A program made the position numbers and the translations under genes. DNA of 63,907 nt, counting the filler, from Octopus bimaculoides (lineage: Eukaryota), in assembly GCF_001194135.2 (NCBI RefSeq). It is 7 parts of 7 records of this genome, joined end to end, with 100 filler letters (N's around TTAATTAATTAA, not from the genome) between each part and the next. Parts side by side here need not be neighbours in the genome. Positions count along the whole stretch, not along the records: positions 1 to 10,124 come from NC_069007.1; 6 more parts are not named here. The stretch is one strand, 5' to 3'. Below the pieces are notes generated by a model, which worked only from the letters and a program-made list of their open reading frames with translations, searched no databases and was not told the DNA's origin. Shown here one piece after another: positions 1 through 48,142 of the stretch. Every line of letters begins with the position of its first letter. Position 1 is the stretch's first letter.

Positions 1-365
1 GGTTGCGACGACTAGGGTTCCAGTTGATCCGATCAACGGAACAGCCTGCTCGTGAAATTAACGTGAAAGTGGCTGAGCACTCCACAGACACGTGTACCCT
101 TAACGTAGTTCTCGGGGATATTCATCGTGACACAGTGTGACAAGGCTGACCCTTTGAATTACAGGCACAACAGAAACAGGAAGTAAGAGTGAGAGAAAGT
201 TGTGGTGAAAGAGTACAGCAGGGTTCGCCACCATCCCCTGCCGGAGCCTCGTGGAGCTTTACGTGTTTTTGCTCAATAAACACGCACAACGCCTGGTCTG
301 GGAATCGAAACCGCGATCTTATGACCGCGAGTCCGCTGCCCGAACCACTGGGCCATTGCGCCTCC
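1..365 (-). mobile_element. tRNA-derived SINE family A (in intron 3 of the VWA gene)
   Basis: Minus-strand head ggaggcgcaatggcccagtgg (A box) ... ggtttcgattccc (B box); highly similar to the copies at 7252 and 8297. Confidence 0.9.
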
Positions 366-795
366 ACTCAATTCCAGTAATTAATCATTATATCGGGCAA
401 AGTCTCATCAGGGAAGTAGAAAAGACATAACGTTAGGTTATTTGATGTTATATTTCCAAATCATCTCAACGGACTCTATTACACACACAGACTCCCCCAC
501 AACACGCACGCACACGCGCATAGACATACACATACATACATACATACATACATACATACATACATACATACATACATACATACATACATACGTAAAAATT
601 CGAAGTGAAAATTTACGTAATTTTTCCCGTTTTAGAGATTTGAGTGGGACATTGCCAGAGAAAATTTAAGATCACCAATTTAATGCAATTCTTATGAAGT
701 GACACTCAAATGTCTCAAACCACAAATATTACAAAAATTATCACTTTGAAATTTTATGTAAACGGATAATGACAATTATTAGACGTCAGACTTAC

Positions 796-1353
796 CTTTA
801 CAAGAATCAGATTCAATTTCTTTCACAATAAAACCAATTTCATTATAATCTTTCAAGTTGATGAAATGTGTACAACTGGGTTCACTTGCTGCTGCAATTA
901 ACTCGGACACTTTTGGATTGACAACTCCAATCGTAAATATAGTGACGCCATCATCTTTCAGTTTTTCAGCCGCCGCTATTGTTTCATTTTCATTATTTGA
1001 CTTTCCATCAGTCACCAAAACTAAAACTTTGGAAGCAACAGATTTTCTTGTATTTGTGAAGACACTGGTACGTGCTTTGTCAAGAGCAGTGTCCGTAGCA
1101 GTACCAGTACCATCGTAAATGATAGCGTCAATAGCATTTCTTACTGCAAAGTTCGTATTGTGGTCTCCTAAGAAAAATGATACGTTAGGTGTATCTGCAA
1201 ATCTAATCACTGCAACACGTGTCTTTTCTGGACTAATGTCTAGGTTATACACAATATTTTTCAAGAAAGTTTTTGTCTTCTCAAAGTCAGGCTTTTCAAC
1301 ACTTCCGGATGAATCAATAAGGAAAACAAGGTCGATCTGGGCACTGGCGCAAT
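796..1353 (-). CDS. Coding exon 3: von Willebrand factor A (VWA) domain, matrilin/collagen VI/XII-like; gene continues beyond window start
   Basis: Acceptor atatttccag| and donor AAAG|gtaagt; 558-nt phase 1-1 exon. DLVFLIDSSGS (DxSxS), GTAT and LVLVTDGKS give an intact MIDAS; flanking Cys in DC...SCK. Confidence 0.93.
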
Positions 1354-1479
1354 CTGGAAATATATTTAAAATCAAACTTATGTTTATGAATCTGTAAATA
1401 TTAAATTATTAAATTTATGCATTTGATTGTTATCAAATTATAACTGCTAGAATAAAAATAGGACGGAGAAAGTTCAGAG

Positions 1480-1750
1480 AGCCATTATACTTGCTGGCAA
1501 CAAAAGATCTCTCTGCATAAAGATGCAGATTGTAAGATTTTTGTAGATGAAGAGCAATGCTGCATGTGGGAAAGAGGGGACTTTGTTAGTTTGGACATGT
1601 GATGTACATGGATGAAGACTGTTGCATAAAGAAAAGGAGTCGTCTAAAATGGATAGAACTTGCGGAAGGAGAAGAGACATGAGTTGTGGAAAAGAGAGAT
1701 CTGTGTTGGTCTGGCCATGTGATATTTTTGGATGAAAGCAGGTACATAAA
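1480..1750 (+). mobile_element. RTE-clade LINE 3' ORF remnant
   Basis: Translates to L-C-*-FGHVMYMDEDCCIK, matching the LRWFGHV motif; related to the end of the 54401-55975 element. Confidence 0.65.
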
Positions 1751-2056
1751 GATGTGGCCATCGCTTAAAATAGATGGAACTTTACTGTTTTTGCAAATAC
1801 TGAATATATATTTTTATATATATTCTTTAATTGGACTGCACCGGCGGACTTGAATGCTTGGCATCCCGTACGCTGTGCCACAGTTTCCATCTCACAAATT
1901 CCATTTCCAGAAGCTATTCTCAAAGACATTTACTTGCCCAAAATGTTACATTGTGTGATCAGATTCGGAATAACTTTGTTATTTGTACCTCAATGCCTGG
2001 TCCTTCTCTCCATGACAAATATCTATCATAGAAATCTAAACAATATCTTTACTTAC

Positions 2057-2345
2057 CATTCCTCTGTTCTAATTTATTTGCTAAGCGTCTGAAGAAAAGC
2101 TTCTGGCCATTTGACGTGATATGCTGCTTCCAGAAATCTGCCTGCAGTTCAATGCTGACCGGGATTGACGTTCTTAAGTTTAAGATAAACAAGCTCATTA
2201 CCAATGCAGAATGTAAAGGTTTTTCTAGGTCAGACATTGTTGCGGTCGACACATCAACACCGAAGTCAGTTTGGACTTTACTGCAATTTGCTTTGAGCAT
2301 ATTCTTGCAAGCATTTTTGACGGTTGTCAATTGGTTGTAGGTTAC
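2057..2345 (-). CDS. Coding exon 2 (rest of N-terminal lysozyme-like domain, 96 aa + 1 nt)
   Basis: Acceptor tttgttttcgcag| at 2346 and donor G|gtaagt at 2056. Open frame VTYNQL...FGVDVSTATMSDLEKPLHSALVMSLFIL...IPVSIELQADFWKQHI...KLEQRN. Phase 0 joins exon 1 to give GGIWR-V; phase 1 joins exon 3. Confidence 0.85.
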
Positions 2346-2566
2346 CTGCGAAAACAAAGGACAAAAGCATTTATGTGCTGACCTGTTAGAAATAGCAAAT
2401 AAATCTACCTCAAATTACATCTTACTGTTATTAAAACGGGGATATATATATATACATATATATATATATATGTATATATATGCCCTTCTTTTATAACAGT
2501 AAGGTGTACTTTATAAATATATATATATATATATATCTATATATATAATGTATGTATAAACACACG

Positions 2567-3575
2567 CAGAGGTTGAGTCGAAACGGTTTCGAATTTTCAC
2601 TGATGATTTTGATAACCTGTATCTCCATGTTGTTTTGCATCTGTGATAATGGATGGCGAAAAAATTTGCAATTAGAACCATTTTACGTAATATGTGAAAA
2701 GTAGGGTTGAATGCAAGAGCAGTGGCAAAAGCTATCTCAAGGAATGTGACAGTAGTCTCGAAGACTTAGGGAGACATTTTGCTTTGGAAGATGAGGCCTT
2801 ACTTGAAACGGCTGACCAACGGGCAAGCATAAGCACTTGTACATTGTCCGTAGGACTTAGTCCATCACAAAGCATCATCAGTCGACATCTCTGTAAGTTC
2901 GGCTTTCTGAACAGATGCAGTCAAGTATTTTCTTATGAATTGACCAACAATCAGGTGCAATCACGAAGATTTGCAAACAAGTGCTGACAATTCCTGGAGA
3001 TGCCAAGTTTTGGTATAAACTTGTAACTGAGGATGGAAAATGGATCTGTTTCGTAACCCTAATGAGAGAAATTAGCGGCTTCATACCAGCCAGGCTTCAG
3101 AACCTGTTGTCAAACAAGGTGGTTTTAATAAAAGGTCTCGTTGTATGTTTGGTTGGATTTCGAGGAGGTGTGGCACTTTGAGCTTGTCCCACTATGAACA
3201 ATTAGCCTTCTGTTCAACACCTGCAGCGAGTATATGATGCTTTGAAAGCGTGCTACATGGCAATGATCAATCAGGGACGTGAATTCTTATCACATGGCAA
3301 TGCCCCTAGCAGATGCTACCAATGTGACCAAGTGAGGAACTTGAGGGGCTGGAAGTGCTCCCACACTACACCTACAGTCCAGGCTTTGCACCATCGGATT
3401 ACTATCTTTACTGAGCCCTGGCTCATTTGCTGAACGGATATGCTGGAAAGAAGAAAGTAACATCGACAAAAGGAAATTCATTAAGTTGGCTAACAATGTT
3501 TGGAGTTTGAAGACCAGTGGCACATCATATACAATCAAGTGGGGAATCGTAGAGAAATATTAACAATTTTAAAAA
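2567..3575 (+). mobile_element. Decayed mariner (Tc1/mariner) transposase pseudogene
   Basis: KLVTEDGKW (cf. IVTGDEKW); GWEVLPH-PYSPxxAPSDYYLF remnant at ~3345-3410; many stops and frameshifts. Confidence 0.8.
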
Positions 3576-3591
3576 TATTTTTTTACTGTAA

Positions 3592-3810
3592 AGGCGTAGG
3601 AGTGACTGTGTGGTAAGTAGCTTGCTTACCAACCACATGGTTCCGGGCTCAGTCCCACTGCGTGGCACCTTGGGCAAGTGTCTTCTACTATAGCCTCGGG
3701 CCGACCAAAGCCTTGTGAGTGGATTTGGTAGACGGAAACTGAAAGAAGCCCGTCGTATATATGTATATATATATATATTATATATATATATATATATATA
3801 TGTGTGCGTG
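3592..3810 (+). mobile_element. tRNA-derived SINE family B (CORE-like), truncated by gap at its internal microsatellite
   Basis: aggcgtaggagtgactgtgtggtaag... accttgggcaagtg (CORE-like) ...gaagcccgtcgtatatat; same family at 28700, 30240, 50880 and 60283. Confidence 0.9.
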
Positions 3811-4635
3811 NNNNNNNNNNNNNNNNNNNNNNNNNNNNNNNNNNNNNNNNNNNNNNNNNNNNNNNNNNNNNNNNNNNNNNNNNNNNNNNNNNNNNNNNNN
3901 NNNNNNNNNNNNNNNNNNNNNNNNNNNNNNNNNNNNNNNNNNNNNNNNNNNNNNNNNNNNNNNNNNNNNNNNNNNNNNNNNNNNNNNNNNNNNNNNNNNN
4001 NNNNNNNNNNNNNNNNNNNNNNNNNNNNNNNNNNNNNNNNNNNNNNNNNNNNNNNNNNNNNNNNNNNNNNNNNNNNNNNNNNNNNNNNNNNNNNNNNNNN
4101 NNNNNNNNNNNNNNNNNNNNNNNNNNNNNNNNNNNNNNNNNNNNNNNNNNNNNNNNNNNNNNNNNNNNNNNNNNNNNNNNNNNNNNNNNNNNNNNNNNNN
4201 NNNNNNNNNNNNNNNNNNNNNNNNNNNNNNNNNNNNNNNNNNNNNNNNNNNNNNNNNNNNNNNNNNNNNNNNNNNNNNNNNNNNNNNNNNNNNNNNNNNN
4301 NNNNNNNNNNNNNNNNNNNNNNNNNNNNNNNNNNNNNNNNNNNNNNNNNNNNNNNNNNNNNNNNNNNNNNNNNNNNNNNNNNNNNNNNNNNNNNNNNNNN
4401 NNNNNNNNNNNNNNNNNNNNNNNNNNNNNNNNNNNNNNNNNNNNNNNNNNNNNNNNNNNNNNNNNNNNNNNNNNNNNNNNNNNNNNNNNNNNNNNNNNNN
4501 NNNNNNNNNNNNNNNNNNNNNNNNNNNNNNNNNNNNNNNNNNNNNNNNNNNNNNNNNNGATACATACATACAAACGTACACACACACACACACACACACA
4601 CACATCTTGCCTTTTATATATGTACGGATTTTCAG

Positions 4636-5545
4636 TGAAAGAAGCTCCCTGGCAATGTTTAAATTTTGTCAAAAATGAAGATTTTGTTACAGGGTTAGAA
4701 ATAGACAGCAGCAAAGTAGTGAAGATGATCAGAGACACGAGGAATAGGAAAGCTGAAAGTCTGCTAGGGATAATTGCAGAGATGTTCAAAATGTCTAAAT
4801 GAGGTAGGGTATATGATTATACGATTATTACCCAGATAGTTAATCAACTTATACAAGAAGTTGTAATACCCAATGACTGACGTAGCAATATCTTGTAAAG
4901 TGCTACAAAGGCAAAGCAGATGCCTTAGAGAGAGGAAACCATAGAAGAATCGCACCACTGGATCAAGGTATGAAGATCACAAAGAGAGTCATAACCCAAT
5001 TGATCTATGATGGAGTAGACCAGCACGAGATGCAGTTTAGCTTTGTTGCCAGAAGAGGTATACCACAGATGTAATCCTACTAGTGAAGCAACTGCAGGAG
5101 AAATGCTTGGCTAAGAATAAACCACTATTTCTGGCATTCGTTGACTTGGGGAAGGCATTTGACTGAGTGTTACTGTAATCTGATGGCCACTTAAGAAACT
5201 AGGCATTGATGAATGGCTTGTGGGAATTATACAAACCATGTAGATAGATGTAGTAAGTGAAGTGAGAGACAACAATGAATTTGGTAACGAATTTAGTATG
5301 CAGGCCGGAGACTATTCAAGGTTCTGTCCTTAGCCCCTCCTTTTCTCATATTTCTAAAGGGCATCAGAGAGAGATTTAAGATCGGTCAACTACTGCGATT
5401 CCAATATGTTGATGATTTAGTTCTCGTAGCTGAATTAATAGGGAAATTAAAGAGGAAATTCTGAGCGTAGAAGCTAAACTTTGACTTGAGAAGTCTTCAT
5501 ATAAACTTAGCAAAGACGAAGGTTTTAGTAAGAAGGGGAGAAGAC
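4636..5545 (+). mobile_element. RTE-clade LINE reverse transcriptase fragment (decayed)
   Basis: Remnants of CYKGKxDAL, QLQEKCLAKNKPLFLAFVDLGKAFD and YVDD; collinear with 54401-55975. Confidence 0.85.
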
Positions 5546-5748
5546 AGGATGCTTGTTCGCTCAAATACATATATATATATAGTTCTTATAGTTATACACA
5601 CACACACACATGTGCACGCAAAGCACACAAACGCATACACCCAATACATCTTCAATCTGGAATCACATCTGGGATTAATATCTATGTATGTATGTATGTA
5701 TGTTTGTGAGTGTGTGCTTGTGTGTATATTAGCATATCTTGTACTTGC

Positions 5749-5976
5749 CCTCCATATTCCACCCGTTGTTGCTGCGATAGACTTCGTCTGGGCCTCTGCT
5801 AACCGTCTCAGGAAATAATAGTCTTGTACCAGAATACATTTCGTTCTGATTCTTCTTATGGTTGCATCGATTACAGCATTACTGGTCTCACCAGGTTTCA
5901 GGGTCAAATCTACGGCATAGACGTGTCTGGCAATGCCAAGACAAATGCCCACAAACAGAAGATATTTGATGGACAT
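5749..5976 (-). CDS. Coding exon 1 of secreted lysozyme-like-domain + VWA protein (signal peptide and start of N-terminal domain, 76 aa)
   Basis: ATG at 5976; MSIKYLLFVGICLGIARHVYA is a hydrophobic signal peptide ending in a VYA cleavage-like site. It is followed by VDLTLKPGETSNAVIDATIRRIRTKCILVQDYYFLRRLAEAQTKSIAATTGGIWR. The exon ends AGG|gcaagt (GC donor, phase 0). Confidence 0.85.
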
Positions 5977-6504: not shown

Positions 6505-6797
6505 ATAATTTCGAAGACCAAGTGATCCTTGGTACGCTGAGAACCCCTCCTACATCTTTTTTGTTTCCTTGGTTACGTTTCTTCCTGTGCCAGAAAAGTG
6601 TATTCTTTACCGCACATATTCCAGTGAGTATCTCCCAGATTATGTCTAGGCATTCTGTGGGACGGCAGTTTCCCACAATATTCCCCTTTCTTCTATCTTT
6701 CGTAATAAATGTTGTCCTCCCAGTCACCATCCACGCGGGGACTGTATCGTTCTGGACACGCTCATTCAATTGGCCTGCTAGTCTTTCATGCACCACG
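6505..6797 (-). mobile_element. R4/Dong-like non-LTR element, RT N-terminal fragment (inverted relative to adjacent 3' part)
   Basis: HERLAGQLNE...VPAWMVTGRTTFITKD..KGNIVGNCRP..CL, then (frameshifted) QKRCRRGSQRTKDHL. Confidence 0.85.
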
Positions 6798-7710
6798 TGG
6801 CATCTCTTACGACCACAAACCCGAAGACATCATCGAAAATGATAATGCAAAGATCCTGTGGGATTTTATGATTCAGTGCAACCATGAGATAGAAAATAGG
6901 AAGCCAGACATAGTGTTAATTGAGAAAGAAAGTAAACTATGCTGGATCATAGATATAGCATGGTCAGCTGACAACAAGGTATGCGATAAGGAAGAAAGAA
7001 AAGTCGATACATATGACAGGTTAGCTTGGGAGGTAAAGCAGTTGTGGTCGATGAAAAAGGTGGTAGTGGTACCAATAATTATCGGAGCCCTAGGAACAGT
7101 GAGTAAAAATCTCGAGTTCATGGAACAAATAGGGGCTGCAATAAGGGTGGAGCACTTGCAGAAAACAGCACTGCTTGGAATCGCTCAAATACTCCGGAAG
7201 GTGCTCGAAAAATAAGAGCTGTTACCTTAGTTCACTGGTAGTGAACAGCTGGGAGGCGCAATGGCCCAGTGGTTAGGGCAGCGGACTCGCGGTCATAGGA
7301 TCGTGGTTTCGATTCCCAGACCAGGCGTTGTGAGTGTTTATTGAGCGAAAACACCTAAAGCTCCACGAGGCTCCGGCAGGGGATGGTGGCGAACCCTGCT
7401 GTACTCTTTCACCTCAACTTTCTCTCACTCTTACTTCCTGTTTCTGTTGTGCTTGTAATTCAAAGGGTCAGCCTTGTCACACTCTGTGTCACACTGAATA
7501 TCCCCCGAGAACTACGTTAAGGGTACACGTGTCTGTGGAGTGCTCAGCCACTTGCACGTTAATTTCACGAGCAGGCTGTTCCGTTGATCGGATCGACTGG
7601 AACCCTCGACGTCGTAAGCGACGGAGTGCCAACAAGACAAAGTGAACAGCTGTCACTGTAGTACATCTCTAGCGTTAGAAGCTGTGCAAAGGCAATGATA
7701 ATAATAATTC
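6798..7710 (+). mobile_element. R4/Dong-like non-LTR element 3' part (restriction-like endonuclease + 3' UTR, (TAA)n tail), interrupted by SINE A
   Basis: KILWDF...NRKPDIVLIEK...IIDIA...K..Y..L...VVPIIIGALG...LQKTALLG..ILRKVL* (RLE, PD-(D/E)xK). The 3' UTR resumes at 7653 and ends gataataataat. Confidence 0.9.
7252..7640 (+). mobile_element. Full-length SINE family A with 12-bp target-site duplication
   Basis: TSD agtgaacagctg at 7240-7251 and 7641-7652; A and B boxes in the head. Confidence 0.93.
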
Positions 7711-7914: not shown

Positions 7915-8296
7915 GGAGTTGATGTCTCATCAAGTAGTGAATCAGATGTTTCCGCCTCTTCTACCATGACATCTACTCAGGGCCGGCCACCGATATAAGC
8001 AACAAAACTCCTACACATGAACACAAGCTTTGGTGAGTCAGATGTTGTGACTCAGATCCAGATGTTTCTATAATCCTCTTGCTGTACCATTTGTCCTCTC
8101 TCTTGAGCAAGATGTAATAAAGGCTTGCTTTGTGATAGCTTCTGACAGTTTTTTTCTAACATCTTTTCTTTCCTTGGCAACGACTTCAAGACTCCCGAGC
8201 AGCGAATGAACCCTCTAACACCTGTTTCTACAGGAACGTATATTACTTCCTACCCTTTCTATCCGTTCTTTTCAAAGAGTTCAACCGTCTCACTGT
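7915..8296 (-). mobile_element. HERO-like (R2 superfamily) RLE LINE 3' remnant
   Basis: Minus strand gives YVPVETGVRGF and QASLYYILLKREDKWY (cf. PVEVGCRGF...ASRWLWLKR..W), followed by a 3' UTR ending gatgagacatc. Confidence 0.6.
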
Positions 8297-8457
8297 GGAG
8301 GCGCAATGGCCCAGTGGTTAGGGCAGCGGACTCGTGGTCATAGGATCGTGGTTTCGATTCCCAGACCAGGCGTTGTGAGTGTTTATTGAGCGAAAACACC
8401 TAAAGCTCCACGAGGCTCCGGCAGGGGATGGTGGCGAACCCTGCTGTACTCTTTCAC
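8297..8457 (+). mobile_element. SINE family A 5' part, cut by gap
   Basis: Near-identical to 7252-7410. Confidence 0.9.
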
Positions 8458-9139
8458 NNNNNNNNNNNNNNNNNNNNNNNNNNNNNNNNNNNNNNNNNNN
8501 NNNNNNNNNNNNNNNNNNNNNNNNNNNNNNNNNNNNNNNNNNNNNNNNNNNNNNNNNNNNNNNNNNNNNNNNNNNNNNNNNNNNNNNNNNNNNNNNNNNN
8601 NNNNNNNNNNNNNNNNNNNNNNNNNNNNNNNNNNNNNNNNNNNNNNNNNNNNNNNNNNNNNNNNNNNNNNNNNNNNNNNNNNNNNNNNNNNNNNNNNNNN
8701 NNNNNNNNNNNNNNNNNNNNNNNNNNNNNNNNNNNNNNNNNNNNNNNNNNNNNNNNNNNNNNNNNNNNNNNNNNNNNNNNNNNNNNNNNNNNNNNNNNNN
8801 NNNNNNNNNNNNNNNNNNNNNNNNNNNNNNNNNNNNNNNNNNNNNNNNNNNNNNNNNNNNNNNNNNNNNNNNNNNNNNNNNNNNNNNNNNNNNNNNNNNN
8901 NNNNNNNNNNNNNNNNNNNNNNNNNNNNNNNNNNNNNNNNNNNNNNNNNNNNNNNNNNNNNNNNNNCTCACTCACTCACTACGGGTATAAATTTTTCCAA
9001 CTTCATCACAACCACCCCACTTACAATATTATACAAAGAATTGTCAAGCAATGAGAGTAGCATTTAAAATTTCATGCGGCATTTACGTGTGTTTGCTTAA
9101 GTACCATTAGACAAATGGGTATGAAACTATAGTAGAGGA

Positions 9140-46620: not shown

Positions 46621-46711
46621 TGTGTCAGTATAGGCATGTTTGTCTATATAGACAGTTATATCTGTAAAGACGTGCTAGATATATAGACATGCATATTTAT
46701 ATAGACATGTA

Positions 46712-48142
46712 TAGGGTTGGCAACTAAGTTCCCACGGCTTTTTTAAATTTTGGAATTTATTGCGTTTTAAATTTTGGAATGTATCTTTTTTTTTTTTCGA
46801 GAATTCTATTTTTGAATCATTTTGGAATCTATTTTTTGTTTTCTTTTTTCTTTTTTTTGTTTTTTAAGTTAATTTTAGTTAATTTTTGTTTATTTTCAGA
46901 TCATTAAAATGGAATGTCAAGTTAAGAAAAACGAGCGTTTTCAACACCTTCTTTTTGCTTTTAATCAAGGTTCTAAGGCCGCAAAAGCTGCTTGCAACAT
47001 TTATGCTGTGTATGGAGAGGGTGCCATAGCTGAAAGAACCGCTCGTGATTGGTATACCAAGTTAAAAAATGGAAACTTTGACCTCAAAGANNNNNNNNNN
47101 NNNNNNNNNNNNNNNNNNNNNNNNNNNNNNNNNNNNNNNNNNNNNNNNNNNNNNNNNNNNNNNNNNNNNNNNNNNNNNNNNNNNNNNNNNNNNNNNNNNN
47201 NNNNNNNNNNNNNNNNNNNNNNNNNNNNNNNNNNNNNNNNNNNNNNNNNNNNNNNNNNNNNNNNNNNNNNNNNNNNNNNNNNNNNNNNNNNNCTCGTCAA
47301 ACGACAAGGGTACTGGCAGAGAAAATGGAATGCTCCCACACTGCTATAGAGAAGCATCTTTACTCGATGGAAAAGGTTCAGAAGTATGGAGCATAGGTTC
47401 CGCATGCTTTAAGTGACAACAACAAAAATTAACGAGTCACAGTCTCCGCTGGTTTGCTTGCTCGTCACCGCTCAACTCATGGATACAAGCAACGATTTCT
47501 TTACCGAATCGTTACTGGCGACGAAAAATGGTGCCTGTACATCAATATGAAGCAGCGTAAGGAATGGCTTAGCCCCCGGAAACAAGCGACACGGCGCATG
47601 AAACAAGATCTTCATCCGCGTAAAACGATGTTGTGCGTATAGTGGGACTGGGAAGGGATTATCCATTATGAATTGCTTGAACGGAACCAAACGGTCAACG
47701 CGAAACTCGTTCAACAGATGGAACGACTCAACACGGCTATTCGAGAGAAAGGACCTAATCGTCAGCATGGATTTCTTCTGCTGCACGACAACGCCCGGCC
47801 TCATATCGCCAATATGACCAAAGAAACCATTCAAACGCATGGCTGGGAAGTGATGCCACACCCGCCGTACTCTCTTGATTTGGCACCAACGGATTTCCAC
47901 CTCTTTCGATCTCTTTCAAATGCTATGTGCAGAGTTTCGTTCAATACTGGTGCAGAATTGAGAGTTTGGTTGGATCAATTTTTCGAGTCGAAATCGGGTG
48001 ATTGAAAATCTTGTTGAACGTTGGGAAGAAGTAGTAAACAACAAGGGTGAATACATTATTGATTAATTAGCCGTTATTTTTTATTAAATCTTTAAAAAAA
48101 TTTAAATTTAAAAAAACAGCGGGAACTTAGTTGCCAACCTAA
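46712..48142 (+). mobile_element. Near full-length mariner (DD34D) element with TIRs and TA TSD; transposase pseudogene from ATG 46909
   Basis: TIR (t)agg(g)ttggcaactaagttccc at both ends with TA flanks. HTH region, WVPHAL (W>TAG), YRIVTGDEKW, LLHDNARPH, HPPYSLDLAPTDFHLF; internal stops and a gap. Confidence 0.95.

Follow-up and report, generated by a model that had tools for sequence, protein, structure and literature searches.

An octopus gene joining a phage-related helical domain to a von Willebrand factor A domain

We analysed a window of 63,907 nucleotides from Octopus bimaculoides (NCBI RefSeq assembly GCF_001194135.2; 'the window' is this whole stretch, seven genomic parts joined end to end with filler between them) and found that positions 796 to 5,976 hold, on the minus strand, the first three coding exons of a gene for a predicted secreted protein in which an N-terminal domain of ~150 amino acids (hereafter the N-domain) is followed by a domain of the von Willebrand factor A (VWA) type. 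Sequence comparison shows solid homology between the animal family to which the N-domain belongs and PHROG 3108, a family of phages and bacteria, and the window protein carries Gln where most members of both carry Glu, a point absent from the first-pass annotation of this DNA. Taken as a whole, the explanation that fits best, and that we hold to be somewhat better than an even bet, is that the N-domain is a phage-derived, glycan-binding module that does not cut its ligand and is tethered to a VWA domain in the secreted products of a tandem gene family.

Gene structure and VWA domain

The features of the gene are as follows (positions along the window; slashes mark exon boundaries).

5749–5976, minus strand: coding exon 1 (ATG at 5976–5974; 76 amino acids), the first half of the N-domain as far as GGIWR; six homologues span 5976–5749 in tblastn
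5914–5976, minus strand: signal-peptide-like residues 1–21 (MSIKYLLFVGICLGIARHVYA), from sequence
5788–5790, minus strand: CAG codon of Gln63 (AEAQT), at the E-[ST] motif position of the family
2346–5748, minus strand: intron 1, GC-AG (donor AGG/GCAAGT, acceptor ttttcgcag/), containing an assembly gap and repeat debris
3811–4558, no strand: assembly gap (run of N), wholly within intron 1
2057–2345, minus strand: coding exon 2, the second half of the N-domain (VTYNQL...KLEQRN; acceptor ttttcgcag/, donor AATG/GTAAGT, phase 1)
1354–2056, minus strand: intron 2, GT-AG, with a ~120-bp repeat in about two copies at ~1564–1782
796–1353, minus strand: coding exon 3, the whole VWA domain, residues 173–358 (acceptor atttccag/, phase 1; donor AAAG/GTAAGT, phase 1)
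1301–1315, minus strand: D186-S-S188-G-S190 of the metal ion-dependent adhesion site (MIDAS), from sequence
1108, 1102, 1096 and 1009, minus strand: codon starts of the other MIDAS positions, Thr255, Thr257, Thr259 and Asp288 (in VTDG), respectively
1–795, minus strand: start of intron 3, with no further coding exon by tblastn

In the first-pass annotation, three phase-compatible exons had been read as encoding a signal peptide, a helical domain and a VWA domain with a full MIDAS, in a gene continuing leftward, and spliced translation together with a Pfam search confirmed all of this; its exons and phases stand, with the donor of exon 1 corrected to AGG/GCAAGT and intron 1 to the GC-AG type. 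The spliced product has 358 amino acids, ends in phase 1 (exon phases 0 then 1) and contains all four of the motif strings quoted at that stage. Residues 1–21 follow the n-h-c pattern of signal peptides and have V-x-A ahead of the predicted cleavage site (read off the sequence), and the protein is predicted to be secreted. The VWA domain matched Pfam PF00092 over residues 180–349 (146.2 bits against a cut-off of 23.8, E = 1.5e-42), its MIDAS is complete (DxSxS, Thr and Asp all present), and Cys174 and Cys357 flank it.

Exon 3 closes on a phase-1 donor, and the gene therefore extends leftward beyond the window edge. Tblastn with homologues (given P numbers here) matched nothing past residue ~364 of P0004 and revealed no extra exon in positions 1–795; in the homologues, three additional exons encode about 155 amino acids or more. 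A relative in Octopus sinensis (locus L013) has six exons with identical exon boundaries, an intron 1 of 3.7 kb and three coding exons after the VWA exon, the first of them ~1.8 kb downstream of it. The region after the VWA domain in P0004, P0008, P0012 and P0033 shares an unclassified domain of ~150 amino acids in one or two copies (pattern in homologues, outside the window: QCGVVTVY.SFNNSYPN..DYDY...ATD..PGK...C.NP.Y), and P0004 and P0008 end in a hydrophobic tail (..INAWIYAGLLLLWQMA), likewise outside the window, which could be a glycosylphosphatidylinositol (GPI) signal or a membrane anchor.

The N-domain family

The N-domain is all helical (AlphaFold model of the paralogue P0001; predicted local distance difference test score, pLDDT, 87). 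Sequence and profile searches of Pfam, NCBIfam and the PDB with it gave no matches, that is, neither a Pfam model nor a sequence match to a solved structure, and a word-indexed search with the N-domain alone returned only three matches. A family profile built from two octopus paralogues and the two window exons, searched against 1.84 billion cluster representatives (50% clustering), recovered 572 representatives at E ≤ 1e-3 and 185 at E ≤ 1e-10, with the computed consensus LRRIAYVE[ST]xDG..GGIWQVD..FxIDW..W.DL.KPLYSGLAARL..IP..QAxYW..YYN. In nearly all members the domain lies at the N-terminus, preceded by a signal peptide, and many members elsewhere are single-domain proteins. The members that carry a species name come from Octopus, Argonauta, Acanthosepion, Haliotis, Aplysia and Patella and from the mites Medioppia and Halotydeus; most others derive from ENA or Logan assemblies.

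Among members of at least 300 amino acids, a VWA domain is present in 59 of 82 and a chitin-binding CBM14 domain in 27 of 82. Full-length annotated models with N-domain and VWA were found in three Octopus species and a cuttlefish (Acanthosepion), and the combinations include N-domain, VWA and three CBM14 (Haliotis P0033), N-domain, VWA and CBM14 (cuttlefish P0012), N-domain and CBM14 (Octopus vulgaris P0014) and a family protein of 1,401 amino acids with additional EGF, SRCR and Kazal domains. Because the pairing of N-domain and VWA recurs across members, the fusion is a conserved architecture rather than an accident of the window locus, and it is evidently widespread in molluscs. The names that homologues carry in their sources ('collagen alpha-1(XIV)-like', 'Willebrand factor A domain-containing 2' or 'uncharacterized') mirror the VWA domain only, and a literature search found no paper that names these loci.

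High-coverage matches in Mytilus named 'COL6A' or 'cartilage matrix' were rejected as family members, being triple-VWA proteins without an N-domain. Some family members (P0028, P0029, P0037, P0051, P0060, P0175 and P0176) consist of three tandem N-domains and nothing more, another route to multiplying the module. Several public models look chimeric (P0023, P0024, P0003 (O. bimaculoides), P0027 and P0010): exon 1 of the family is spliced to an OSGIN2-like FAD/NAD(P)-binding gene, exon 2 is mostly skipped, or two tandem paralogues are merged (837 amino acids). For annotation, the 'collagen/matrilin-like' labels, truncations at 174 amino acids, OSGIN2-like fusions and the 837-residue tandem merger are all misleading.

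Homology to phage and bacterial proteins

Tblastn with P0070, an animal member that carries the Glu, matched an uncultured 636-kb phage (5e-10), Pseudomonas phage PSA28 (4e-6) and Gp54 of Klebsiella phage phiKO2 (3e-5), and P0070 matched phrog_3108, a family listed as of 'unknown function', at E = 9e-15. Profile alignment of the animal family with this phage family by hhalign spanned 147 columns (99.4%, E = 2.5e-21), and a hidden Markov model (HMM) made from phage and bacterial sequences only matched the window's own domain (33 bits, E = 2.5e-6), with reversed decoys unmatched. In a Foldseek search of BFVD with the P0001 model, the best match was an uncultured Caudovirales protein of 1,021 amino acids (E = 1e-5, template modelling (TM) score 0.73, root-mean-square deviation (rmsd) 2.6 Å), accompanied by four more proteins of 148–162 amino acids (TM 0.54–0.67), so that the similarity to predicted phage structures ranges over TM 0.54–0.73. 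Both families are all-alpha, ~150 amino acids long, and have in common the motifs E-T...G-[LIV]-x-Q-[VI]-D, F/G-[IV]-D and IP....A.YWKKYYN. A signal peptide is missing from the phage proteins, which either stand alone beside holins or form the C-terminus of large proteins and which, in the five that were aligned, keep the Glu, whereas in octopus the domain belongs to a predicted secreted protein, is fused to VWA and carries Gln at that position.

At least 441 IMG/VR contigs, and the genomes of 146 bacterial species, contain phage and bacterial relatives. Three of their genes were located as follows.

L011 3001–3339 (PMBT28 46661–47158): PHROG 3108 gene of Salmonella phage PMBT28 (AUZ95556)
L008 2902–3399: PHROG 3108 gene of Pseudomonas phage PSA28 (QVJ13210)
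L007 2842–3333: PHROG 3108 gene (gp54) of Klebsiella phage phiKO2

In PSA28 and PMBT28 the gene lies directly upstream of a holin, which is followed by an open reading frame (ORF) for a membrane-anchored coiled-coil protein; a holin adjoins it in locus L039 too and lies directly upstream in an IMG/VR contig, and in phiKO2 the gene sits between a small ORF with multiple transmembrane segments and two small ORFs. Nothing else in the complete genome of PMBT28 is annotated as a lysin; the authors of that genome named the holin only. In other IMG/VR contigs the domain forms the C-terminus of proteins of 794–937 amino acids, which are possibly virion-associated. A lysis cassette and the end of a large protein are the two usual settings of phage wall-degrading domains, and by analogy with these settings we infer a muralytic role for the phage family; PHROG 3108 thus looks like an unrecognised class of endolysins.

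In a rough neighbour-joining tree, drawn with no support values, 124 of 126 eukaryote-type domains grouped in a single clade, separate from the 71 sequences of phages and bacteria, and two more phage-like members fell outside it. With incomplete taxon sampling the tree is a rough guide only, and it would fit a single old transfer or a small number of them.

Resemblance to GH23 enzymes and loss of the conserved Glu

In structure, the nearest known proteins are probably those of glycoside hydrolase family 23 (GH23). Among solved structures, Foldseek ranked the lytic transglycosylase MltE first for the P0001 model (E = 0.64, TM 0.39), with g-type lysozyme and Slt70 within the top eleven; for the model of P0070 (pLDDT 87), it ranked first the chitinase of Ralstonia sp. 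A-471 (E = 0.77, probability 0.80, TM 0.44/0.53, rmsd 4.9 Å), an enzyme assigned to GH23 (PMC13281251), followed by MltC and then Campylobacter Slt (Cj0843). The weaker matches in BFVD all fall within the lysozyme superfamily (SLT, phi29 gp13, destabilase, GH19 and LT_GEWL).

A GH23 alignment was assembled from goose, swan, ostrich and salmon g-type lysozymes (checked against the PDB) and the Escherichia coli K-12 proteins MltE, Slt70, MltC and MltD (from the genome). In hhalign comparisons with it, the family motifs E-[ST] and G-[IL]-x-Q-V-D line up with the catalytic E-S and GLMQVD of GH23 over 34 columns (animal family, P = 5e-3; phage family, P = 5e-4; probability 7–31%), and none of 150 column-shuffled GH23 profiles reached the observed scores of 25.2 and 30.8 (shuffle mean 11, s.d. 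1.9, maximum 17.7). Against the g-type lysozymes alone the comparison was not significant (P = 0.22). The order and spacing of the motifs are the same in both groups (a Glu plus Ser/Thr at a helix end, then G-[LI]-[MW]-Q-V-D ~20 residues on, where MltD reads GIWQI), as is the aromatic-rich C-terminal helix (AQYYKQH in goose egg-white lysozyme (GEWL), QADFWKQH in the window protein); the N-domain differs in having no predicted beta-hairpin, no Pfam SLT match and Foldseek E values of only 0.6–0.8, and the window protein differs further in having no Glu. We consider a GH23-like fold of the N-domain likely, and the kinship of the family to GH23 lysozymes and transglycosylases suggestive.

Of the GH23-type motif pair, the window protein has GGIWRV left, the Glu being replaced by Gln. 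At the E-[ST] position, animal domains have Glu in 130 of 172 (75%) and Gln in 21 of 172, and the five aligned phage relatives (phiKO2 gp54, PSA28, PMBT28, B8b_026 and LR756504) all have Glu-Thr where the window protein has Gln63-Thr64; a looser pattern, E[ST]..G[ILVM]x[QH], is found in 108 of 144 phage and bacterial domains. All close octopus paralogues have Gln or Lys instead, and the octopus clade also deviates at other highly conserved positions (G32S, D66S, G67I, W108V and Y121H). The Glu is lost in 23 of 59 VWA-fused members against 8 of 57 single-domain members (Fisher p = 0.003, uncorrected for relatedness), a preference that suits a shift from enzyme to binding module. Given the change from Glu to Gln, enzyme activity is unlikely in the window protein; the small single-domain animal members, most of which keep Glu, are probably enzymes.

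Proposed function and comparison with known systems

The interpretation given in the first-pass annotation was partly supported overall. The uncharacterised invertebrate domain that it aligned with the N-domain is real and the computed consensus agrees with it; the fusion to VWA proved recurrent among the long members; the suggested phage or bacterial relationship became a significant homology, into which an old horizontal acquisition fits; and the expectation of matrilin- or collagen-like pipeline labels was borne out by names of the collagen XIV-like, VWA domain-containing 2 or uncharacterized kind. Its assignment of the domain as lysozyme- or transglycosylase-like is suggestive: GH23 takes the top Foldseek ranks and the motifs align, but none of those structural matches reached significance and the Pfam SLT model went unmatched. 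The glycan-recognition, opsonin-like or matrix role that it suggested is conjectural.

In the explanation that we prefer, the gene whose 5' half lies in the window belongs to a cephalopod family that evolves fast and has been duplicated in tandem, and its product would comprise a signal peptide, the all-alpha N-domain, a VWA domain with a metal site and a C-terminal region with a hydrophobic tail (outside the window). The N-domain would be descended from the PHROG 3108 phage and bacterial family and be most similar to GH23 lysozymes, lytic transglycosylases and chitinases; without the Glu, it would most likely bind a polymer of the N-acetylglucosamine (GlcNAc) type, chitin or peptidoglycan, without cutting it, while the VWA domain would bind protein partners through its metal site. 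The protein could then act in a matrix or cuticle that contains chitin, by cross-linking or decorating it, or could label the walls of microbes. Both the glycan binding and the biological role, probably one in matrix, cuticle or recognition, are what we infer.

By homology, the nearest known proteins are those of phrog_3108; by probable fold and motifs they are the GH23 enzymes, and by architecture the molluscan matrix proteins that combine VWA and chitin-binding domains. A VWA domain with CBM14 is a molluscan matrix-type architecture (PMC11291548; bioRxiv 10.1101/2021.07.10.451900), and Pif, BMSP and Pif-like proteins resemble the present family in being secreted and, as regards the Haliotis and cuttlefish relatives, in carrying a VWA domain followed by one to three CBM14. 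They differ in that they are described without the N-domain, which the Pif/BMSP paper does not treat, and in that the octopus members have neither CBM14 nor laminin-G and instead have the unclassified C-terminal region, with a hydrophobic tail in P0004 and P0008; CBM14 was found neither in the window nor in the full-length octopus homologues P0004, P0006, P0007 and P0008, and is present in P0012 and P0033. According to a preprint (bioRxiv 10.1101/2021.07.10.451900), neither Pif nor BMSP was found in cephalopods. The likeness to matrilins and collagens VI–XIV, a single Cys-bracketed VWA domain with MIDAS, is confined to that domain, for which the best non-family matches were mussel 'cartilage matrix protein-like' and 'COL6A' models; no EGF, coiled-coil, fibronectin type III (FN3) or collagen repeats were present in the homologues scanned.

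Animals have domesticated wall-acting enzymes of bacteria and phages before, as in the dae amidases of ticks and mites and in GH25 and phage-type lysozymes. The N-domain family resembles these in its patchy distribution among animals (molluscs and mites), its secretion and its bacterial or phage cell-wall relatives, and differs from them in fold family and in its place within multidomain, matrix-type proteins that are often without the catalytic-like residue. On a broader scenario, to which we give slightly less than an even chance, an unrecognised endolysin class of phages (PHROG 3108, a distant relative of GH23) was captured once, early, by one animal lineage and spread among invertebrates, molluscs and mites included, as secreted single-domain enzymes; within molluscs it would repeatedly have been built into VWA/CBM14 matrix proteins, often losing the Glu to become a binder of chitin or peptidoglycan, and the octopus tandem family would be an offshoot in shell-less cephalopods.

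If these readings are true, an invertebrate family without a Pfam model (572 representatives) would gain a structural and evolutionary assignment, and a widespread phage family of 'unknown function' would become an endolysin candidate, including in PMBT28, which has no annotated lysin. Molluscan VWA/chitin-binding matrix proteins would have a previously unnoticed N-terminal module, which would bear on the organisation of chitin matrices (shell, cuttlebone, beak and cuticle) and on how foreign wall enzymes turn into binding modules.

Several points weigh against the proposal of a tethered, non-cutting glycan binder. The gene model here is drawn from genomic sequence and comparison with homologues, the donor of exon 1 is of the rarer GC type, and the scaffold could join two tandem paralogues, the gap lying within intron 1 and the family being multi-copy. 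Overall dN/dS (the ratio of nonsynonymous to synonymous substitution rates) against the O. sinensis relative is 0.67, indicating weak constraint. Structures were modelled for P0001 (a paralogue with 68% identity) and P0070 (a relative with 29% identity) in place of the window protein, and neither model gave a Foldseek match in the PDB at E ≤ 0.001 (rmsd 5–10 Å); Pfam SLT or related models were matched neither by the window protein at E ≤ 10 nor by ten relatives and two phage members at E ≤ 1. The Fisher test on Glu loss disregards phylogenetic non-independence. The octopus proteins have no CBM14, so that their link to chitin is by association with relatives, and the literature yielded no measurements of binding or activity for any member, phage or animal.

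Two rival explanations concern the gene itself. Exons 1 and 2 could encode a stand-alone secreted protein of 174 amino acids (..EQRNGK, then stop), with the VWA exon belonging elsewhere or to a minor isoform. Retention of intron 2 would bring an in-frame stop into exon 2 at its donor (G/GTAAGTAA; TAA at 2051–2049), this donor-plus-stop sequence, GGT[AG]AGTAA, is kept in three paralogous loci (window 2049–2056, minus strand; L001 at ~13625; L002 at ~6125), the RefSeq models P0001 and P0002 (LOC106882095 and LOC115227331) have precisely 174 amino acids, and single-domain members are common elsewhere in the family. However, the contigs of both 174-residue models stop 150–370 nt past exon 2, so that a downstream exon could not be called and the models are probably truncated, and in models on longer contigs or chromosomes this phase-1 donor is joined to an exon for VWA or CBM14, the junction N/D-C being conserved; we regard two separate products as quite improbable and an isoform that retains intron 2 as possible. 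Equally, there is only a slim chance that the copy is decaying or mis-assembled, as a pseudogene or as a chimera of two tandem paralogues across the gap. Besides the dN/dS, the gap and the GC donor (5741–5748, minus strand, where two paralogous loci have GTAAGT), this would suit the nearest relatives of the exons, which differ (O. bimaculoides P0024 for exon 1, 91%; O. sinensis LOC115230178 for the second half of exon 2, 77%), and the fact that no identical protein was found in the database. AG/GCAAGT agrees with the consensus of functional GC-AG introns; the donor may be either that of a functional intron or an early sign of decay. The three exons are nevertheless open, in phase and full length, and the gap is spanned by no reading frame; alignment to P0004 and P0027 (O. 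sinensis), P0005 and P0007 (O. vulgaris) and P0006 (O. bimaculoides) shows no indel at residues 76/77 or 172/173, and in tblastn these three exons are matched in order by P0012, a cuttlefish model. The junctions being collinear with those of homologues and without missing residues, no coding exon is hidden in the gap. The MIDAS and its flanking cysteines are intact, the exons are better conserved than the flanking introns in the comparison with the O. sinensis relative (~84% against ~74%; 75% amino acid identity), and dN/dS reaches 0.60 in the N-domain and 0.68 in the VWA domain (dS 0.23). With all frames open, the window gene looks like a fast-evolving yet functional member of a tandem family.

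The other two rivals concern the N-domain. It may still be an enzyme (lysozyme, transglycosylase or chitinase) acting through other residues, the protein then being a VWA-anchored immune effector; the window protein does retain polar and aromatic residues conserved in the family (D52, R57, R58, W75, D115, Q144 and W148), but its most enzyme-like single residue is Gln, it and the octopus paralogues have diverged at the further positions listed above, and Glu is lost preferentially in fused members, all of which makes continued catalysis unlikely. Alternatively, the domain may not be lysozyme-like at all but some helical module, for protein interaction or otherwise, that phages have as well, its GH23 likeness being a motif-level coincidence. 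The empty Pfam, NCBIfam and PDB sequence searches and the high rmsd of the PDB structural matches would be expected on that account, as would a GH23 profile match of just 34 columns at low probability. Set against it are the first rank of GH23 for two independently built models, the restriction of the weaker BFVD matches to the lysozyme superfamily, the alignment of both catalytic GH23 motifs with the right order and spacing at a score that no shuffle reached, and the holin-adjacent and virion-protein settings, which are those of phage wall-degrading domains; we think this account, too, is unlikely.

Assembly gap, repeats and neighbouring sequence

The gap in intron 1 is bordered on one side by (TA)n at 3756–3801 and a high-copy repeat at 3586–3806, of which the 35-kb O. 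sinensis locus has at least 13 copies at 87–93% identity, and on the other by (AC)n at 4578–4604; these microsatellites and the repeat explain the break in the assembly. Also in intron 1, broken ORFs at 2694–3433 and 4620–5530 resemble element debris. Upstream of the gene, an intact ORF of 168 amino acids on the plus strand (6709–7215), with repeat copies on its flanks, may be of transposable-element origin; Pfam gave no match for it, and none for five ORFs of transposable-element appearance.

An interspersed repeat of ~190 bp with a tRNA-like head (ggcgcaatggcccagtggttagggc...) occurs at 175–367, 7252–7442 and 8294–8455, the third copy entering a second gap (8458–8966). ARAGORN called no tRNA in these copies, which resemble short interspersed nuclear elements and share 88–91% identity with one copy at the O. 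sinensis locus. The ~120-bp repeat of intron 2, which Tandem Repeats Finder (TRF) did not report in the window, is present in at least five tandem copies in the intron of the O. sinensis relative (L013 13033–13671), against about two here.

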